Assembly: GCF_000143415.4 (NCBI RefSeq)
Contig: NW_003314311.1
Span: forward strand, 1,310,769 to 1,374,768
DNA from: Selaginella moellendorffii
Lineage: Eukaryota > Plantae > Lycopodiophyta
DNA length: 64,000 nt
Direction: 5' to 3'
In this document: positions 34,663-43,683 of the stretch, in pieces
How the letters are laid out: every line of letters begins with the position of its first letter
How positions within the stretch are numbered: the first letter of the stretch is position 1
Translations under genes and position numbers: made by a program
Notes under the pieces: generated by a model
Told to the model about the DNA's origin: nothing
Databases searched by the model: none
Seen by the model: the letters and a program-made list of their open reading frames with translations, nothing else

Positions 34663-34740
34663 TTTAAATAGGTAAAGCAGCCGGGGTTGCTCTGTTGAGC
34701 CCCGGCCGTGAATGCGAGCTCCAAGTGGGCCATTTTTGGT
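34663..34740 (+). rRNA. 28S rRNA fragment, left flank of the young PLE
   Basis: TTTAAATAGGTAA..GAGCTCCAAGTGGGCCATTTTTGGT, conserved LSU domain II sequence. Confidence 0.85.
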
Positions 34741-34867
34741 TAAGCAGATCGACTAGGCCATTTTCGGTACATTCGTCCGAGGCATAGGATCATCCGCCCG
34801 GTACGGTACCGACCACGACCAAAACGATTTCCCTTAACAATTCCTATGTCACCTCCTACGGTTTGGG

Positions 34868-35200
34868 TTTTTCCATGTCCGCCATCCACCGTCGTAGTAG
34901 AGCCTGGTTATCATTGACTCGATCGGTAAGGAGTGTCCAGACTAGGCGCCACCATTCTTTGGTTTCAACCTGCTGGAAGAGGCAGAGGTATCGCTTGTTC
35001 TCGCCAACTGCCTCGGATTCCGGCACCGTGAGCAGCTTGTCCGCAATGTTTTTCTCATATGCAAAAATCTCACGTAAGCGCTCAGGTTTCTTTGCGGCTA
35101 ACAGCAGTAAGAAGTACTGCACTGCCGGGACGGGAGCCACAAAATCATCAGTGTTCGCGTACTCCGTCATCTCGGGTAGCCAGAAATCCTGGAAAACCAC
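34868..35200 (-). pseudogene. Truncated copy of the PLE ORF1 N-terminus (read-through tail)
   Basis: Matches 40105-40437 (..RRWMADMEK), then breaks into the terminal 137-bp segment. Confidence 0.85.
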
Positions 35201-36680
35201 GCATCAGTCCATATCCGGTACGGCGGGAAAGTAGGGATGGATCGCATGGCGTTTTGTATCGGCAGCCAGGTATCACACCCTGGCACGGCTGTCCCTCGCG
35301 GGTATTTTTGGTTAAGCAGATCGACTAGGCCGTTTTCGGTACATTCGTCCGAGGCATAGGATCATCCGCCCGGTAACCCGGTACCGACCACGACCAAAAC
35401 GATTTCCCTTAACAATTCCTATGTCACCTCCTACGGTTTGGGTGTCCGGGGGGTACCTGTATCATGGAAGACGAGGATTAGTAATGCAATCTCCGCTAGC
35501 TCTATCTCTCATTTTGTGAAAGTACGAAGCTAGGTCTCAAAACTGAACTGAGATTTGCACGACTGATGCTCGCGAGCCAATGTACTCAGGTACATGCCCG
35601 GGCCGCACATCAGAAGTGACTTCCAAAGATTAGAGCTAAGGAACATGCTCAACCTGATCGCTATCCGTTGACTCATGGATCTCGCCGTCTGGACCAGTCG
35701 CTGTCATCCCGTCTTTTTTCTAAGCGGATGATTAGAAGCTGGAACAGTCGAGAGTACAAGCACTACCTGGGCAGAGTCAGTAAGAACCCCTTGTGTCGCT
35801 GTGGTGTTTAGTTCCAGCGCTCTGGCCGAGAGGGATTCCTACAGGCCAAGGGTAAAAAACCGCAGCAAAACGAATCGTTTGTACCCGTTTTTGCGTGGCC
35901 AGGAATGCGGAAGTGAGATTCCTCGCGACCTTAGTGGTGGGTGTGAGCTCGTTTTGAGCTATCCCCAAACAAGCACTTCGTTGGCGCTGCTCATTCTTGC
36001 GGTGTGCAACGAAGCGGCTGTTGATCCTGGAGTGGGCGAGAAGTGTGCGTGGTTGTGCTAGCGCACAGCCTTGCAGCGGCCCGAGCTTGCTCTGCTTGTG
36101 GATGCGCTCCTGGAGAATGCGGCGGCGGCGGATGCAAGCGAGAAACCCTAACGTTAGGGTTTTTCCCGTCGCTTCATACCTTTCGGTGTGAGAAAATCCA
36201 GCGCCCGCAGCCATGAAGTCGACTAGCTATAGCTTGTAATTAGGTTTGCCAATCCGTACAGCGTGTTTCTTCGCGCGAGATTCTGTGAGGAATCCAAAGT
36301 TTTGTTTTTTACCATGCCACGTCTACTCATGGATCCCATTAGTTTATTCATGGGAAAACAGAGTTTTCCATAAGTAAGGTTTCCTTTAGAGATTATTTCT
36401 AAGGAAGACCTTGCTGTGATTAAGGCGTGGGATCTGTCTCAGATTGAGAGCACAGCAACTTGTGTTGTTTTTTAATTTTTATCAATCAAAACACAGTTGT
36501 AGTCGAAGGTACGCTTGCGTTTTTTAGTTCAGCGCGTGACCAAGGACAGCATGGTAAGTTTGGGGGAACTAATTCTTTTGTTGTTCACAGTCCAAAACGG
36601 CATAAATATCGAATCTATTATGTTTCGATATGATGCTAGAGTGATGGATAGTCCTGTCTAGAGGACAGAGTTCCTGGTAC

Positions 36681-40437: not shown

Positions 40438-41558
40438 GCATCAGTCCATATCCGGTACGGCGGGAAAGTAGGGATGGATCGCATGGCGTTTTGTATCGGC
40501 AGCCAGGTATCACACCCTGGCACGGCTGTCCCTCGCGGGTATTTTTGGTTAAGCAGATCGACTAGGCCGTTTTCGGTACATTCGTCCGAGGCATAGGATC
40601 ATCCGCCCGGTAACCCGGTACCGACCACGACCAAAACGATTTCCCTTAACAATTCCTATGTCACCTCCTACGGTTTGGGTGTCCGGGGGGTACCTGTATC
40701 ATGGAAGACGAGGATTAGTAATGCAATCTCCGCTAGCTCTATCTCTCATTTTGTGAAAGTACGAAGCTAGGTCTCAAAACTGAACTGAGATTTGCACGAC
40801 TGATGCTCGCGAGCCAATGTACTCAGGTACATGCCCGGGCCGCACATCAGAAGTGACTTCCAAAGATTAGAGCTAAGGAACATGCTCAACCTGATCGCTA
40901 TCCGTTGGAGTGGGCGAGAAGTGTGCGTGGTTGTGCTAGCGCACAGCCTTGCAGCGGCCCGAGCTTGCTCTGCTTGTGGATGCGCTCCTGGAGAATGCGG
41001 CGGCGGCGGATGCAAGCGAGAAACCCTAACGTTAGGGTTTTTCCCGTCGCTTCATACCTTTCGGTGTGAGAAAATCCAGCGCCCGCAGCCATGAAGTCGA
41101 CTAGCTATAGCTTGTAATTAGGTTTGCCAATCCGTACAGCGTGTTTCTTCGCGCGAGATTCTGTGAGGAATCCAAAGTTTTGTTTTTTACCATGCCACGT
41201 CTACTCATGGATCCCATTAGTTTATTCATGGGAAAACAGAGTTTTCCATAAGTAAGGTTTCCTTTAGAGATTATTTCTAAGGAAGACCTTGCTGTGATTA
41301 AGGCGTGGGATCTGTCTCAGATTGAGAGCACAGCAACTTGTGTTGTTTTTTAATTTTTATCAATCAAAACACAGTTGTAGTCGAAGGTACGCTTGCGTTT
41401 TTTAGTTCAGCGCGTGACCAAGGACAGCATGGTAAGTTTGGGGGAACTAATTCTTTTGTTGTTCACAGTCCAAAACGGCATAAATATCGAATCTATTATG
41501 TTTCGATATGATGCTAGAGTGATGGATAGTCCTGTCTAGAGGACAGAGTTCCTGGTAC

Positions 41559-43562
41559 TCAGCTTGAATTTGCTGAGTCGTCGAGCTGTGGTGGCCTATT
41601 GGCCGGTTCTCTCCAGATGTCAAAGAAAATTTCCAAGACTGCTTGTACCGGAGTCAGGGGGCTGGTGAGAATTATACGATCCAGACCACTGAGGATGAGT
41701 CGTCTCAATGCATAGCGATGGAATCCTTTTTCCACGAAGCATTCAACGAGATTATCAATCTCGAGGACGACACCACCGGCGGTATTAATCAGATAAAAAA
41801 GCGCAAAGACTTGCCCCAGGATCACCTTGGATGAGTTTGCGACGGGCCGGTTTGAATCTCGATGAATGTACAGCGAGACTTTGAATGGAAGTGATCGGCG
41901 CTTGTCATATTTTGTGGTTAAGAAGGTACCGTCAACTCGTATGATCTGAATCTGAAGGCTCAAAAAGTGAGCGGACAGATTCACGAGCGAGCCGTCCGTG
42001 TTCACGAATGGATTATCCATCTCGTTCTGCATGGCCAGGAACCGTAATGGATATATCCAGAACGGATTTCCTTCAGATTCGACTTGATCAGGGTCAAGGA
42101 ATCGGAGGATCATGGGGTTATTCATTGACACCAGATCGTCCATGTATCGGAACGTATGTTCGAATAAGCGCAGCAGATCGTACCGGCCTAGACGAGCGAG
42201 TCGAGTGATAAAGTTATACTCGAAATAGAATAGGTACAGGTTACACCACAAAGGCGAGCACGAGAAGCCCATAGGAATTCCTCGGACTTGTCTCCATACT
42301 CGATCACCCAGCCGGACGTATGTGTTCCGGATAATGAAGTGATTTAGCTCGATGACTTTTGTTGGATCCATTCTGGTGGCCTTCACTGATGAGTGGCGTA
42401 GAGGTTTCCATTCGGCCTCAAGCTCGCCGTTCTTCTTTTGAATCAGAAAAAGGTCCTTATGGAGGTGGTTTTGGTGCGCGAAAGCCAAATTGACGAGGTT
42501 TGTCATGGCCGTCGTGAGGCCTTGATCTCCCTCAAGGGGGATGGCCTCGTAGCACTTTGTGATATCTCCCGTATAGATCGTGGTGATCTTGTCGGGGAGA
42601 TTAATCGCGAACTCCTGTGTGGATCCAAGGATCCAGCACGCGTTCGTTTTTCCTCCGAAGAATTTTGCCCGTGCGTAGAAATCATCGGCTACGTTTTGTA
42701 GCGCCTCCTGTATTCCTTTCAGGATAGCGGTGAGGCAAATTGTGATTTCAGAGAAGACACATCCATCCGCATTCGTTAACCAGCGCATTTTATTCTTATG
42801 CGCTTTGTAGATCCCCATAAGGTAAGGGAGATCTGGTCTCAGTGGCGGGAATTCCTGTAAGGGCGGTTCACCAAGCAGTTGTTTTACAACTTGCTCAGGC
42901 GTCTCAGGGACATTATTGTCCGAGACTACGAGTGAAAAGTCGTCACTATTCATCCGCGCAAGCGCTTGCTCCCGGGCCAACGTTTTGCAAAAGAAGGTGG
43001 GTGTGTTGGCCGCTTTATCTGCGCCACTGATGTACAAGTGTTTATGTACCCACTCCAATTGCCGCTTTGCCTCAGGGGTGGTCATCACATCTATCATCGG
43101 GGTGGTCTGGCAATTTTGTACTGCCATTCGGACCCGGTAGTTGATATGCTGTTTAACAGCAGCTTCGTTGCTAGGCCAGTTACGGATGTAGACATCGGGA
43201 ATCATACTGGCAATCCGATCCCAAGCCTCACAGACTTCGGCAATGATTTTTGCTGTCTGGAGTGGTTTCGGGGTGATGTGATTGAGACCTTTCTCGATGA
43301 CAGTCGTGAGTATGCGTGAGCCAAGGATCTTTGGATCCAAAGTACGCACATGTCCAGTCTCGTCGAGATAAGTCACCCATGGCCAACGTTTGCATTCGCA
43401 AACCAGTGGTGCATGAGTGTCCCAGTTACAGAAAACCTCTTTGGGTTTATAGAAGTCGTGTTTGATCTGGGGTTCGTACCTCCAGCCAAATACGATGGGA
43501 TCCAGGAGTTCCGCGTCTAGGCCAATCATTTCCAGGCATTCCCTCATAAGGGTGCGGATACT
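41559..43562 (-). CDS. Second PLE RT copy, 5'-truncated at the 28S junction (open from ATG 43547)
   Basis: Near-identical to 36681-38684 (offset 4878); one visible amino-acid change, ILF>IFF. Confidence 0.85.
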   Translation of the reverse strand, partial: SIRTLMRECLEMIGLDAELLDPIVFGWRYEPQIKHDFYKPKEVFCNWDTHAPLVCECKRWPWVTYLDETGHVRTLDPKILGSRILTTVIEKGLNHITPKPLQTAKIIAEVCEAWDRIASMIPDVYIRNWPSNEAAVKQHINYRVRMAVQNCQTTPMIDVMTTPEAKRQLEWVHKHLYISGADKAANTPTFFCKTLAREQALARMNSDDFSLVVSDNNVPETPEQVVKQLLGEPPLQEFPPLRPDLPYLMGIYKAHKNKMRWLTNADGCVFSEITICLTAILKGIQEALQNVADDFYARAKFFGGKTNACWILGSTQEFAINLPDKITTIYTGDITKCYEAIPLEGDQGLTTAMTNLVNLAFAHQNHLHKDLFLIQKKNGELEAEWKPLRHSSVKATRMDPTKVIELNHFIIRNTYVRLGDRVWRQVRGIPMGFSCSPLWCNLYLFYFEYNFITRLARLGRYDLLRLFEHTFRYMDDLVSMNNPMILRFLDPDQVESEGNPFWIYPLRFLAMQNEMDNPFVNTDGSLVNLSAHFLSLQIQIIRVDGTFLTTKYDKRRSLPFKVSLYIHRDSNRPVANSSKVILGQVFALFYLINTAGGVVLEIDNLVECFVEKGFHRYALRRLILSGLDRIILTSPLTPVQAVLEIFFDIWREPANRPPQLDDSANSS

Positions 43563-43683
43563 GAACTGGTGATGCGGGATGAACCGAAAGCCAGGCTACG
43601 GTGCCAAAGTGCGCGCTAACCCAGATCCCACAAAGGGTGTTGATTGATTAAGACAGCAGGACGGTGGTCATGGAAGTCGAAAT

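Follow-up and report, generated by a model that had tools for sequence, protein, structure and literature searches.

A composite Penelope-like insertion within 28S rRNA gene sequence

The subject of this analysis is a 64,000-nucleotide stretch of the Selaginella moellendorffii genome (contig NW_003314311.1, positions 1,310,769 to 1,374,768; hereafter the window), in which a fragment of the 28S rRNA gene is interrupted by a Penelope-like element (PLE). Self-comparison and inspection of the sequence identify a single composite minus-strand insertion at 34732-43564, which comprises, in element orientation, a 5′-truncated unit (43564 to 40541), a full unit of 5237 nt (40540 to 35304) and a 573-bp mini-unit (35303 to 34732). 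The 28S pieces on either side are in the sense orientation on the plus strand. The left flank occupies 34663-34740 and is the same as that of another genomic copy, L001; reads from two S. moellendorffii RNA-seq runs, compared with window positions 34600-40100, place its start at 34663 and, having fitted the flank, go on as native 28S. Its final 9 nt, ATTTTTGGT (34732-34740), are common to the 28S and the element terminus. The right flank (43565-43991) resumes at ACTGG and is unambiguous from 43565, with the GA at 43563-64 being microhomology common to element and 28S. Rfam matched 28S on the plus strand at 43538-43860, and decayed 28S at 29000-29579. An earlier interpretation made from the letters of the window (the sequence-only reading) had already described this interruption of 28S, and the lack of a target-site duplication, in the same terms.

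Each unit ends in two short stretches resembling 28S, referred to here as sites 1 and 2. Site 1 is a 17-nt 28S mimic that forms the RNA 3′ terminus of the element, UCUGCUUAACCAAAAAU, and lies at the left rDNA junction (34732-34748, minus strand). Site 2, GGCCATTTTCGGTA, lies 7 nt inside the element (34756-34769, minus strand) and agrees with 28S GGCCATTTTTGGTA at 13 of 14 positions. In the full unit (35304-40540, minus strand) the two sites occupy 35304-35320 and 35328-35341, and after them come a 3′ untranslated region (UTR) of about 1.4 kb, open reading frame 2 (ORF2), ORF1 and the 5′ UTR. The upstream unit (40541-43564, minus strand), truncated inside ORF2, carries the sites at 40541-40557 and 40565-40578, and lacks a 358-bp 3′-UTR segment that is present in the full unit at 35671-36027 (minus strand). 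The mini-unit consists of a 137-nt 3′ tail segment T (34732-34867, minus strand), sharing 97% identity with its full-unit counterpart, joined straight to a 436-nt 5′ segment X (34868-35303, minus strand; 5′ UTR and start of ORF1) with the body of the element skipped. This X-T junction was found at the window locus alone.

The insertion is surrounded by a non-coding long terminal repeat (LTR) element at 31443-47280, whose LTRs (31443-32589 and 46466-47280) are 99% identical. The 28S fragment within it totals 513 bp (34663-34748 plus 43565-43991) and there is no rDNA array there, contrary to the earlier view of the flanks as an rDNA target. A related LTR copy in L006 (23199-23659) has unrelated sequence where the window copy carries 28S, and the 28S piece is therefore private to the window copy. 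This LTR copy thus acquired the 28S piece, and the PLE inserted into it later. Because a short ectopic 28S fragment was targeted, neither an rDNA array nor RNA polymerase I transcription is required, and local 28S sequence suffices for targeting.

Encoded proteins and classification

By its sequence features the element is assignable to the endonuclease-less PLEs of PLE-X (Chlamys-related) type, inserted antisense to 28S. ORF2 (36681-38813, minus strand) encodes the reverse transcriptase (RT), with an upstream CxC motif (CEC, residues 98-100), a DKA motif of the DKG type and YMDD; across 17 relatives, C98 and C100 hardly vary and D225 and K226 do not vary at all. RVT_1 was the sole Pfam family matched. 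The conserved N-terminus of ORF2 (from GRKWLVKEE) precedes any ATG, in the ORF1-ORF2 region at 38813-38869, and the relative L047 carries its own ATG where this N-terminus starts. ORF1 (38869-40407, minus strand) encodes a 512-aa ‘N-terminal extension’ protein with a zinc-knuckle-like core, CRCDCQGC, of which C324, C326 and C329 are conserved across 42 sequences, giving the CxCx1-8C motif of PLE-X; distant homologues are detectable through this Cys-rich core only. The two frames are separated by a 56-nt gap containing stops, and a simple search found no in-frame GT-AG intron linking them. Both proteins correspond to annotated S. moellendorffii gene models.

Neither a GIY-YIG nor any other Pfam nuclease domain was found in ORF1, ORF2 or the 17 RT relatives. 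An AF2 model of ORF1 (pLDDT 65) had no PDB match by Foldseek and gave just generic helical-bundle matches by VIA-align (Z ≤ 5.3), while an Atlas search with ORF1 returned no usable match. One ORF1 homologue gave a weak GRF-like zinc-ribbon match, below cut-off. A PDB sequence search with the RT profile found no match.

PLE-X families of Selaginella that lack an endonuclease and target 28S were described by Craig, Yushenova, Rodriguez & Arkhipova in 2021 (PMC8557442), so the rDNA targeting by Chlamys-type PLEs in spike mosses that the sequence-only reading mentioned is indeed already published. Compared with the main text of that paper, the present element shares the species, a CxC and DKG-type RT without GIY-YIG, the CxCx1-8C extension, a pseudo-LTR or partial tandem layout, and a precise 28S site. 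It differs in its 3′-terminal 28S mimic with a diagnostic extra base, and in that no hammerhead was detected, whereas canonical hammerhead ribozymes are reported there for the published families; the same main text leaves the targeting mechanism open. Three Rfam scans, covering 29000-52000 (E ≤ 1), 34700-36100 (E ≤ 10) and L001-L006 (gathering score), gave no hammerhead match, and the one sequence picked up by a motif script, CUGAUGA, is non-canonical and lies within ORF1. Nor did these scans show a ribozyme of any other kind where the units end; a divergent ribozyme may be present in the element.

A 28S-like sequence forms the 3′ terminus of every unit

The terminus UCUGCUUAACCAAAAAU, in which every unit ends, corresponds to 28S ATTTTTGGT-AAGCAGA in antisense, with a single base added. 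In the window the 17-mer ATTTTTGGTTAAGCAGA occurs exactly at 34732, 35304, 40541 and 51190, and with one mismatch at 29559, giving five matches against a chance expectation of 0.02; the canonical GGTAAGCAGA is absent from the whole window. The sequence-only reading had located this target-like 17-mer correctly but took several copies to be internal to the element. Each of these ‘internal’ motifs is in fact the 3′ end of one unit where it meets the next, head to tail. The junction always reads CCAAAAAT/ACCCGCGAGGG (the slash marks the join) and is identical in 10/10 tandem junctions, drawn from the window and five other scaffolds. As the 17-mer falls exactly at these junctions, the motif is the 3′ terminus of the unit. 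It also belongs to the element RNA, as had been proposed, since it is present at every tandem junction and in all three insertions found outside rDNA (L002, L004 and L046). We see that GATCTGCTTAACCAA is invariant in 11 copies, decayed ones included, and that the motif is retained in subfamilies that are 76-87% identical, a conservation that the sequence-only reading had named as a check on its proposal.

Two old copies within the window carry both sites. At 29559-29596 (minus strand) they form the 3′ terminus of a decayed copy of a diverged subfamily, which lies at the same 28S position, has the same extra T and adjoins decayed 28S at 29000-29558. At 51190-51227 (minus strand) they mark a head-to-tail junction of another old copy that is about 76% identical to the young units.

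Site 2 reads GGCC(A/G)TTTTCGGTA at 34756, 35328 and 40565, matches 28S exactly at 29583, and reads GGCCATTTTCAGTA at 51214; by our own estimate, the chance of a match of this type within 50 nt is about 3e-4. The resemblance reported earlier is thereby upheld. The variable positions of site 2, (G/A)TTTT(C/T)(G/A)G, fall on two CpGs, and the perfect match in the old copy may therefore reflect deamination decay and not the ancestral state.

The extra T separates element from host sequence

Approximately 200 rRNA reads per RNA-seq run fit 34663-34740. Native expressed 28S continues from ATTTTTGGT into AAGCAGAACTGGCGATGCGGG in 166 + 152 reads, and the canonical GGTAAGCAGAACTGG, reading GGT followed by AAGCAGAACTGGCG without an extra T, is thus represented by 318 reads. 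Neither run contains a class of reads going from GGTTAAGCAGA into ACTGG. Because expressed 28S is canonical, the extra T is not host sequence, and the difference between GGTTAAG in the element and GGTAAG in the host is diagnostic. All of the 28S left junctions that can be read (3/3: the window, the old copy at 29559, and L001) have GGTTAAG. As the host rRNA lacks the extra T and these junctions have it, the bases after ...GGT were copied from element RNA. The earlier claim that element sequence replaces target sequence at the rDNA junctions is borne out here, as is its expectation that GGTTAAG would be missing from host 28S, in so far as this concerns expressed 28S and the three readable junctions. 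Taken together, the junction sequences show that cDNA synthesis was primed by the 3′ end of a 28S sense strand, which lay at or before ...TTTGGT and was paired to the RNA terminus.

Were GGTTAAG a native rDNA variant or an assembly artefact, the junctions would be merely target sequence. We find this hardly credible and rejected it on the RNA-seq reads: nothing beyond the presence of GGTTAAG at junctions speaks for it, while GGTAAGCAGAACTGG is seen in 318 rRNA reads and no read joins GGTTAAGCAGA to ACTGG; moreover, five other scaffolds carry GGTTAAG at insertions outside rDNA and at tandem junctions.

Independent insertions share one 28S position

Five independent events were found at the same point of 28S, namely those of the window, the old copy, L001, L003 and L044. 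L001 lies inside a true 5.8S-28S unit, has the same extra-T left junction, and on its 5′ side consists of a 266-nt 3′ fragment and a full unit. L044 (GL377690, 5275-22581) is a 28S insertion made of a 409-nt 3′ fragment and at least 3.2 tandem units, and L003 is an old 28S copy truncated at unit position 970. Viewed as an array, L044 is a long PLE tract inside rDNA-like sequence with up to at least 4 head-to-tail units. There are accordingly four different 5′ structures (unit position 1856, the 266-nt and 409-nt 3′ fragments, and position 970), all of which rejoin 28S within 7 nt of one point: the right flanks start as (GA)ACTGG in the window, (AC)TGG in L001, GCAGAACTGG in L044 and CAGAACTGG in L003. 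The 28S insertions show no target-site duplication, and 2-7 nt of the native AAGCAGA are lost. When the right-flank positions are considered alongside the extra T of the left junctions, the primer end falls between GGT and the AA after it.

The units within an insertion are not identical: they differ by the 358-bp indel in the window, by 3% in the mini-unit T, and by 0.5-0.9% in L044. A mini-unit T that is 97% identical to the full-unit T was copied from a different RNA, and the differences within insertions favour template jumps between different RNAs as the probable source of the tandem structure. Rolling-circle copying of a single RNA is disfavoured by the same differences.

In the three insertions outside rDNA, the 3′ junctions read AACCAAA/TTTACT (L002), AACCAA/TAACTT (L004) and AACCAAAA/CATGG (L046), so that these copies are joined to their flanks within the terminal A-run, with 2-4 nt of T/A microhomology. 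No telomere repeats were found at the element sites, which are internal 28S or genic. At 9846-9863 of L046, an 18-nt copy of the terminus (ATCTGCTTAACCAAAAAT) stands ahead of the 5′ end of a full-length copy, and the adjoining flank contains CTGCTTAA. This short piece looks like a PLE ‘tail’, has microhomology where it joins on the 5′ side, and would fit a short template jump.

The same junctions bear on whether the mimic is a passive relic. Read-through transcripts of rDNA-resident copies could have taken 17 nt of flank, the extra T being a neutral master-copy mutation; the motif would then play no part in targeting, which would instead come from, for example, nucleolar localisation or fragile rDNA. 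As expected of captured flank, the end of the mimic coincides exactly with the restart of the right flank (GCAGA/ACTGG), site 2 resembles an older captured flank, and the sites of the published families differ by 4 bp according to the main text of PMC8557442. We nonetheless judge such an origin improbable, as the junction bases are copied from the mimic, which so takes part in priming. Moreover, the motif is invariant across subfamilies, off-target joins fall within its terminal A-run, and the ectopic 28S fragment that was targeted is outside the rDNA array.

A proposed priming mechanism and the source of site specificity

Overall, the best explanation of these data, to which we give a probability of roughly 0.6, is that an endonuclease-less PLE-X element is primed through pairing of its 3′-terminal 28S mimic. 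A 28S sense-strand DNA 3′ end stopping at or just before ...ATTTTTGGT would pair with the 9 nt that end the RNA (ACCAAAAAU-3′). The element RT would extend this primer, first rewriting TAAGCAGA from the RNA, which would place the extra T at the junction, and then copying the element. On reaching the RNA 5′ end, the RT would jump to the 3′ end of another element RNA, giving head-to-tail units with an invariant junction. The cDNA would rejoin the target a few bases downstream through 0-3 nt of microhomology, and the native AAGCAGA (2-7 nt) would be lost and masked by the mimic, hence no target-site duplication. Pairing of ACCAAAAAU-3′ with the 28S sense strand, extending up to 16 nt with a bulge, would set the site preference.

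Several observations weigh against this interpretation. Independent events agree on the 3′ end or break to within about 2 nt; pairing alone does not account for such precision, but a site-specific nuclease, either host-encoded or hidden in the fold-orphan ORF1, would. Just three 28S left junctions are readable, all of them in S. moellendorffii. The two RNA-seq runs contain no element RNA, the element being silent in these samples, and the real RNA 3′ end is therefore deduced from DNA junctions. The canonical hammerhead published for PLE-X was not found here by Rfam or motif scans, and the fold of the 3′ region and tail RNA is not significant (z = -0.5).

Given a 3′ end so precise, and an ectopic copy as target, two sources of the 3′-OH were considered: the cut of an unrecognised nuclease, or capture of a strand that is nicked, broken or nascent. 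In the latter case a nascent replication-fork strand could switch template and return; capture of this kind, with return a few bases downstream, would explain clustered right junctions without a break. We tentatively entertain, at less than even odds, a fully RNA-addressed and endonuclease-independent retrotransposon, in which about 17 nt at the RNA 3′ terminus act as a guide and capture a short-lived sense-strand 3′ end of 28S (for example a fork strand or an R-loop nick) at an internal chromosomal site.

Alternatively, protein could set the site, if an unrecognised sequence-specific nuclease (ORF1, the RT N-terminus or a host enzyme) cuts 28S at GGT^AAG. The 3′ mimic would then be captured flank, at most aiding template register, as downstream 28S does for R2 RNA. 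A break constant to about 2 nt and right flanks clustered within 7 nt would suit a nuclease, as would the targeting of a single-copy ectopic 28S fragment; ORF1 is conserved, with a Cys-rich core and no known fold, and primer-template pairing is dispensable for R2Bm (PMC11194090). We consider this rather unlikely, because no nuclease motif or fold was seen in either ORF or in the 17 RT relatives, no endonuclease is reported in the main text of PMC8557442 either, and three insertions lie at unrelated sites with T/A microhomology only. The proposal of the sequence-only reading that antisense RNA pairs with, and primes from, a 28S sense 3′ end is in short supported by the templated junction, but its further step, that pairing alone confers specificity, is not established, as the precision of about 2 nt fits a site-specific nuclease equally well.

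Related elements and neighbouring features

A second S. moellendorffii PLE family is found at 9048-14699 of L006. It has 43% RT identity, an ORF1-like domain fused to the RT, 600-bp pseudo-LTRs and a non-28S site, with no telomere repeats and no Rfam hammerhead. A further 36 metagenomic, moss-associated relatives (L007-L042), with RT identity of about 35% and lying on short JGI metagenome contigs (Ga0181537 and the Ga0116226-31 series), have no 28S flank; they suggest a large pool of this PLE lineage that is as yet undescribed. The only other relative with two ORFs is L047, a Logan contig with 39% RT identity that is without element ends; no closer kin was found.

Elsewhere in the window, 47286-51440 holds an old PLE-X copy with about 75% identity to the young units. 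An inverted piece belonging to the LTR family of the 31443-47280 element interrupts this copy at approximately 48277-49139, and a Ty1/copia-like element, from about 51460, cuts it on the right. The window also contains a direct repeat of 2.1 kb (53840-56017 and 60056-62127) with 86% identity, and a run of N at 56112-56211 is an assembly gap.

Relation to known systems and significance

Other PLEs without an endonuclease, Athena and Coprina, carry reverse-complement telomere repeats that pair with G-overhangs (Gladyshev & Arkhipova 2007, as summarised in PMC8557442). Like these, the present element has no endonuclease and bears at its 3′ end a reverse complement of the target, available for pairing with a free DNA 3′ end in priming. 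In Athena and Coprina, by the same summary, the target is the G-overhang of a chromosome end, the telomere units are repeated and a hammerhead is adjacent; here, a single 17-mer corresponds to one internal, unique 28S position without a natural free end, and neither telomeric location or repeats nor an adjacent hammerhead was found. By analogy, the priming of this element would be a new variant of the telomere-pairing mechanism of endonuclease-less PLEs.

R2 and R1 resemble the element in their 28S-specific insertion, in a template RNA that may carry pairing, target-derived 3′ sequence, and in RT template jumping. They differ in encoding a site-specific endonuclease and DNA-binding domains, and their 28S sites are elsewhere, that of the present element being at about position 1150 of the Rfam LSU model. 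R2, whose insertion site is determined by its protein, is also sense-oriented and co-transcribed, with dispensable primer pairing (PMC11194090), whereas the element is antisense. Telomerase, whose RT lineage is related to PLE RTs (PMC8557442), likewise aligns a DNA 3′ end on a short RNA template segment. Its template is internal, bounded and reused, whereas the present motif, found a single time in each unit, is terminal and is copied just once, ahead of the whole 5-kb RNA. The label ‘telomerase-like’ used in the sequence-only reading is therefore apt for the primer-template alignment but not for the template itself.

While rDNA targeting by PLE-X was known, the evidence for homology-primed initiation, from the mimic and its marker, is in neither the main text of PMC8557442 nor the literature searched. 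The extra T offers direct sequence evidence that the 3′ end of an element RNA is aligned on a 28S DNA 3′ end and copied from there. It bears on the question raised in 2021 of how a PLE without an endonuclease reaches one exact 28S position, and extends the telomere-pairing strategy of such elements to an internal genomic site. If specificity does reside in 17 nt of RNA, the element would be a natural model for programmable, nuclease-free, RT-mediated insertion, and an altered guide should retarget insertion. It would then also represent, at an internal site, the counterpart of the PLEs that pair with telomeres, and might mark an intermediate between priming of the telomerase type and retrotransposition throughout the genome.

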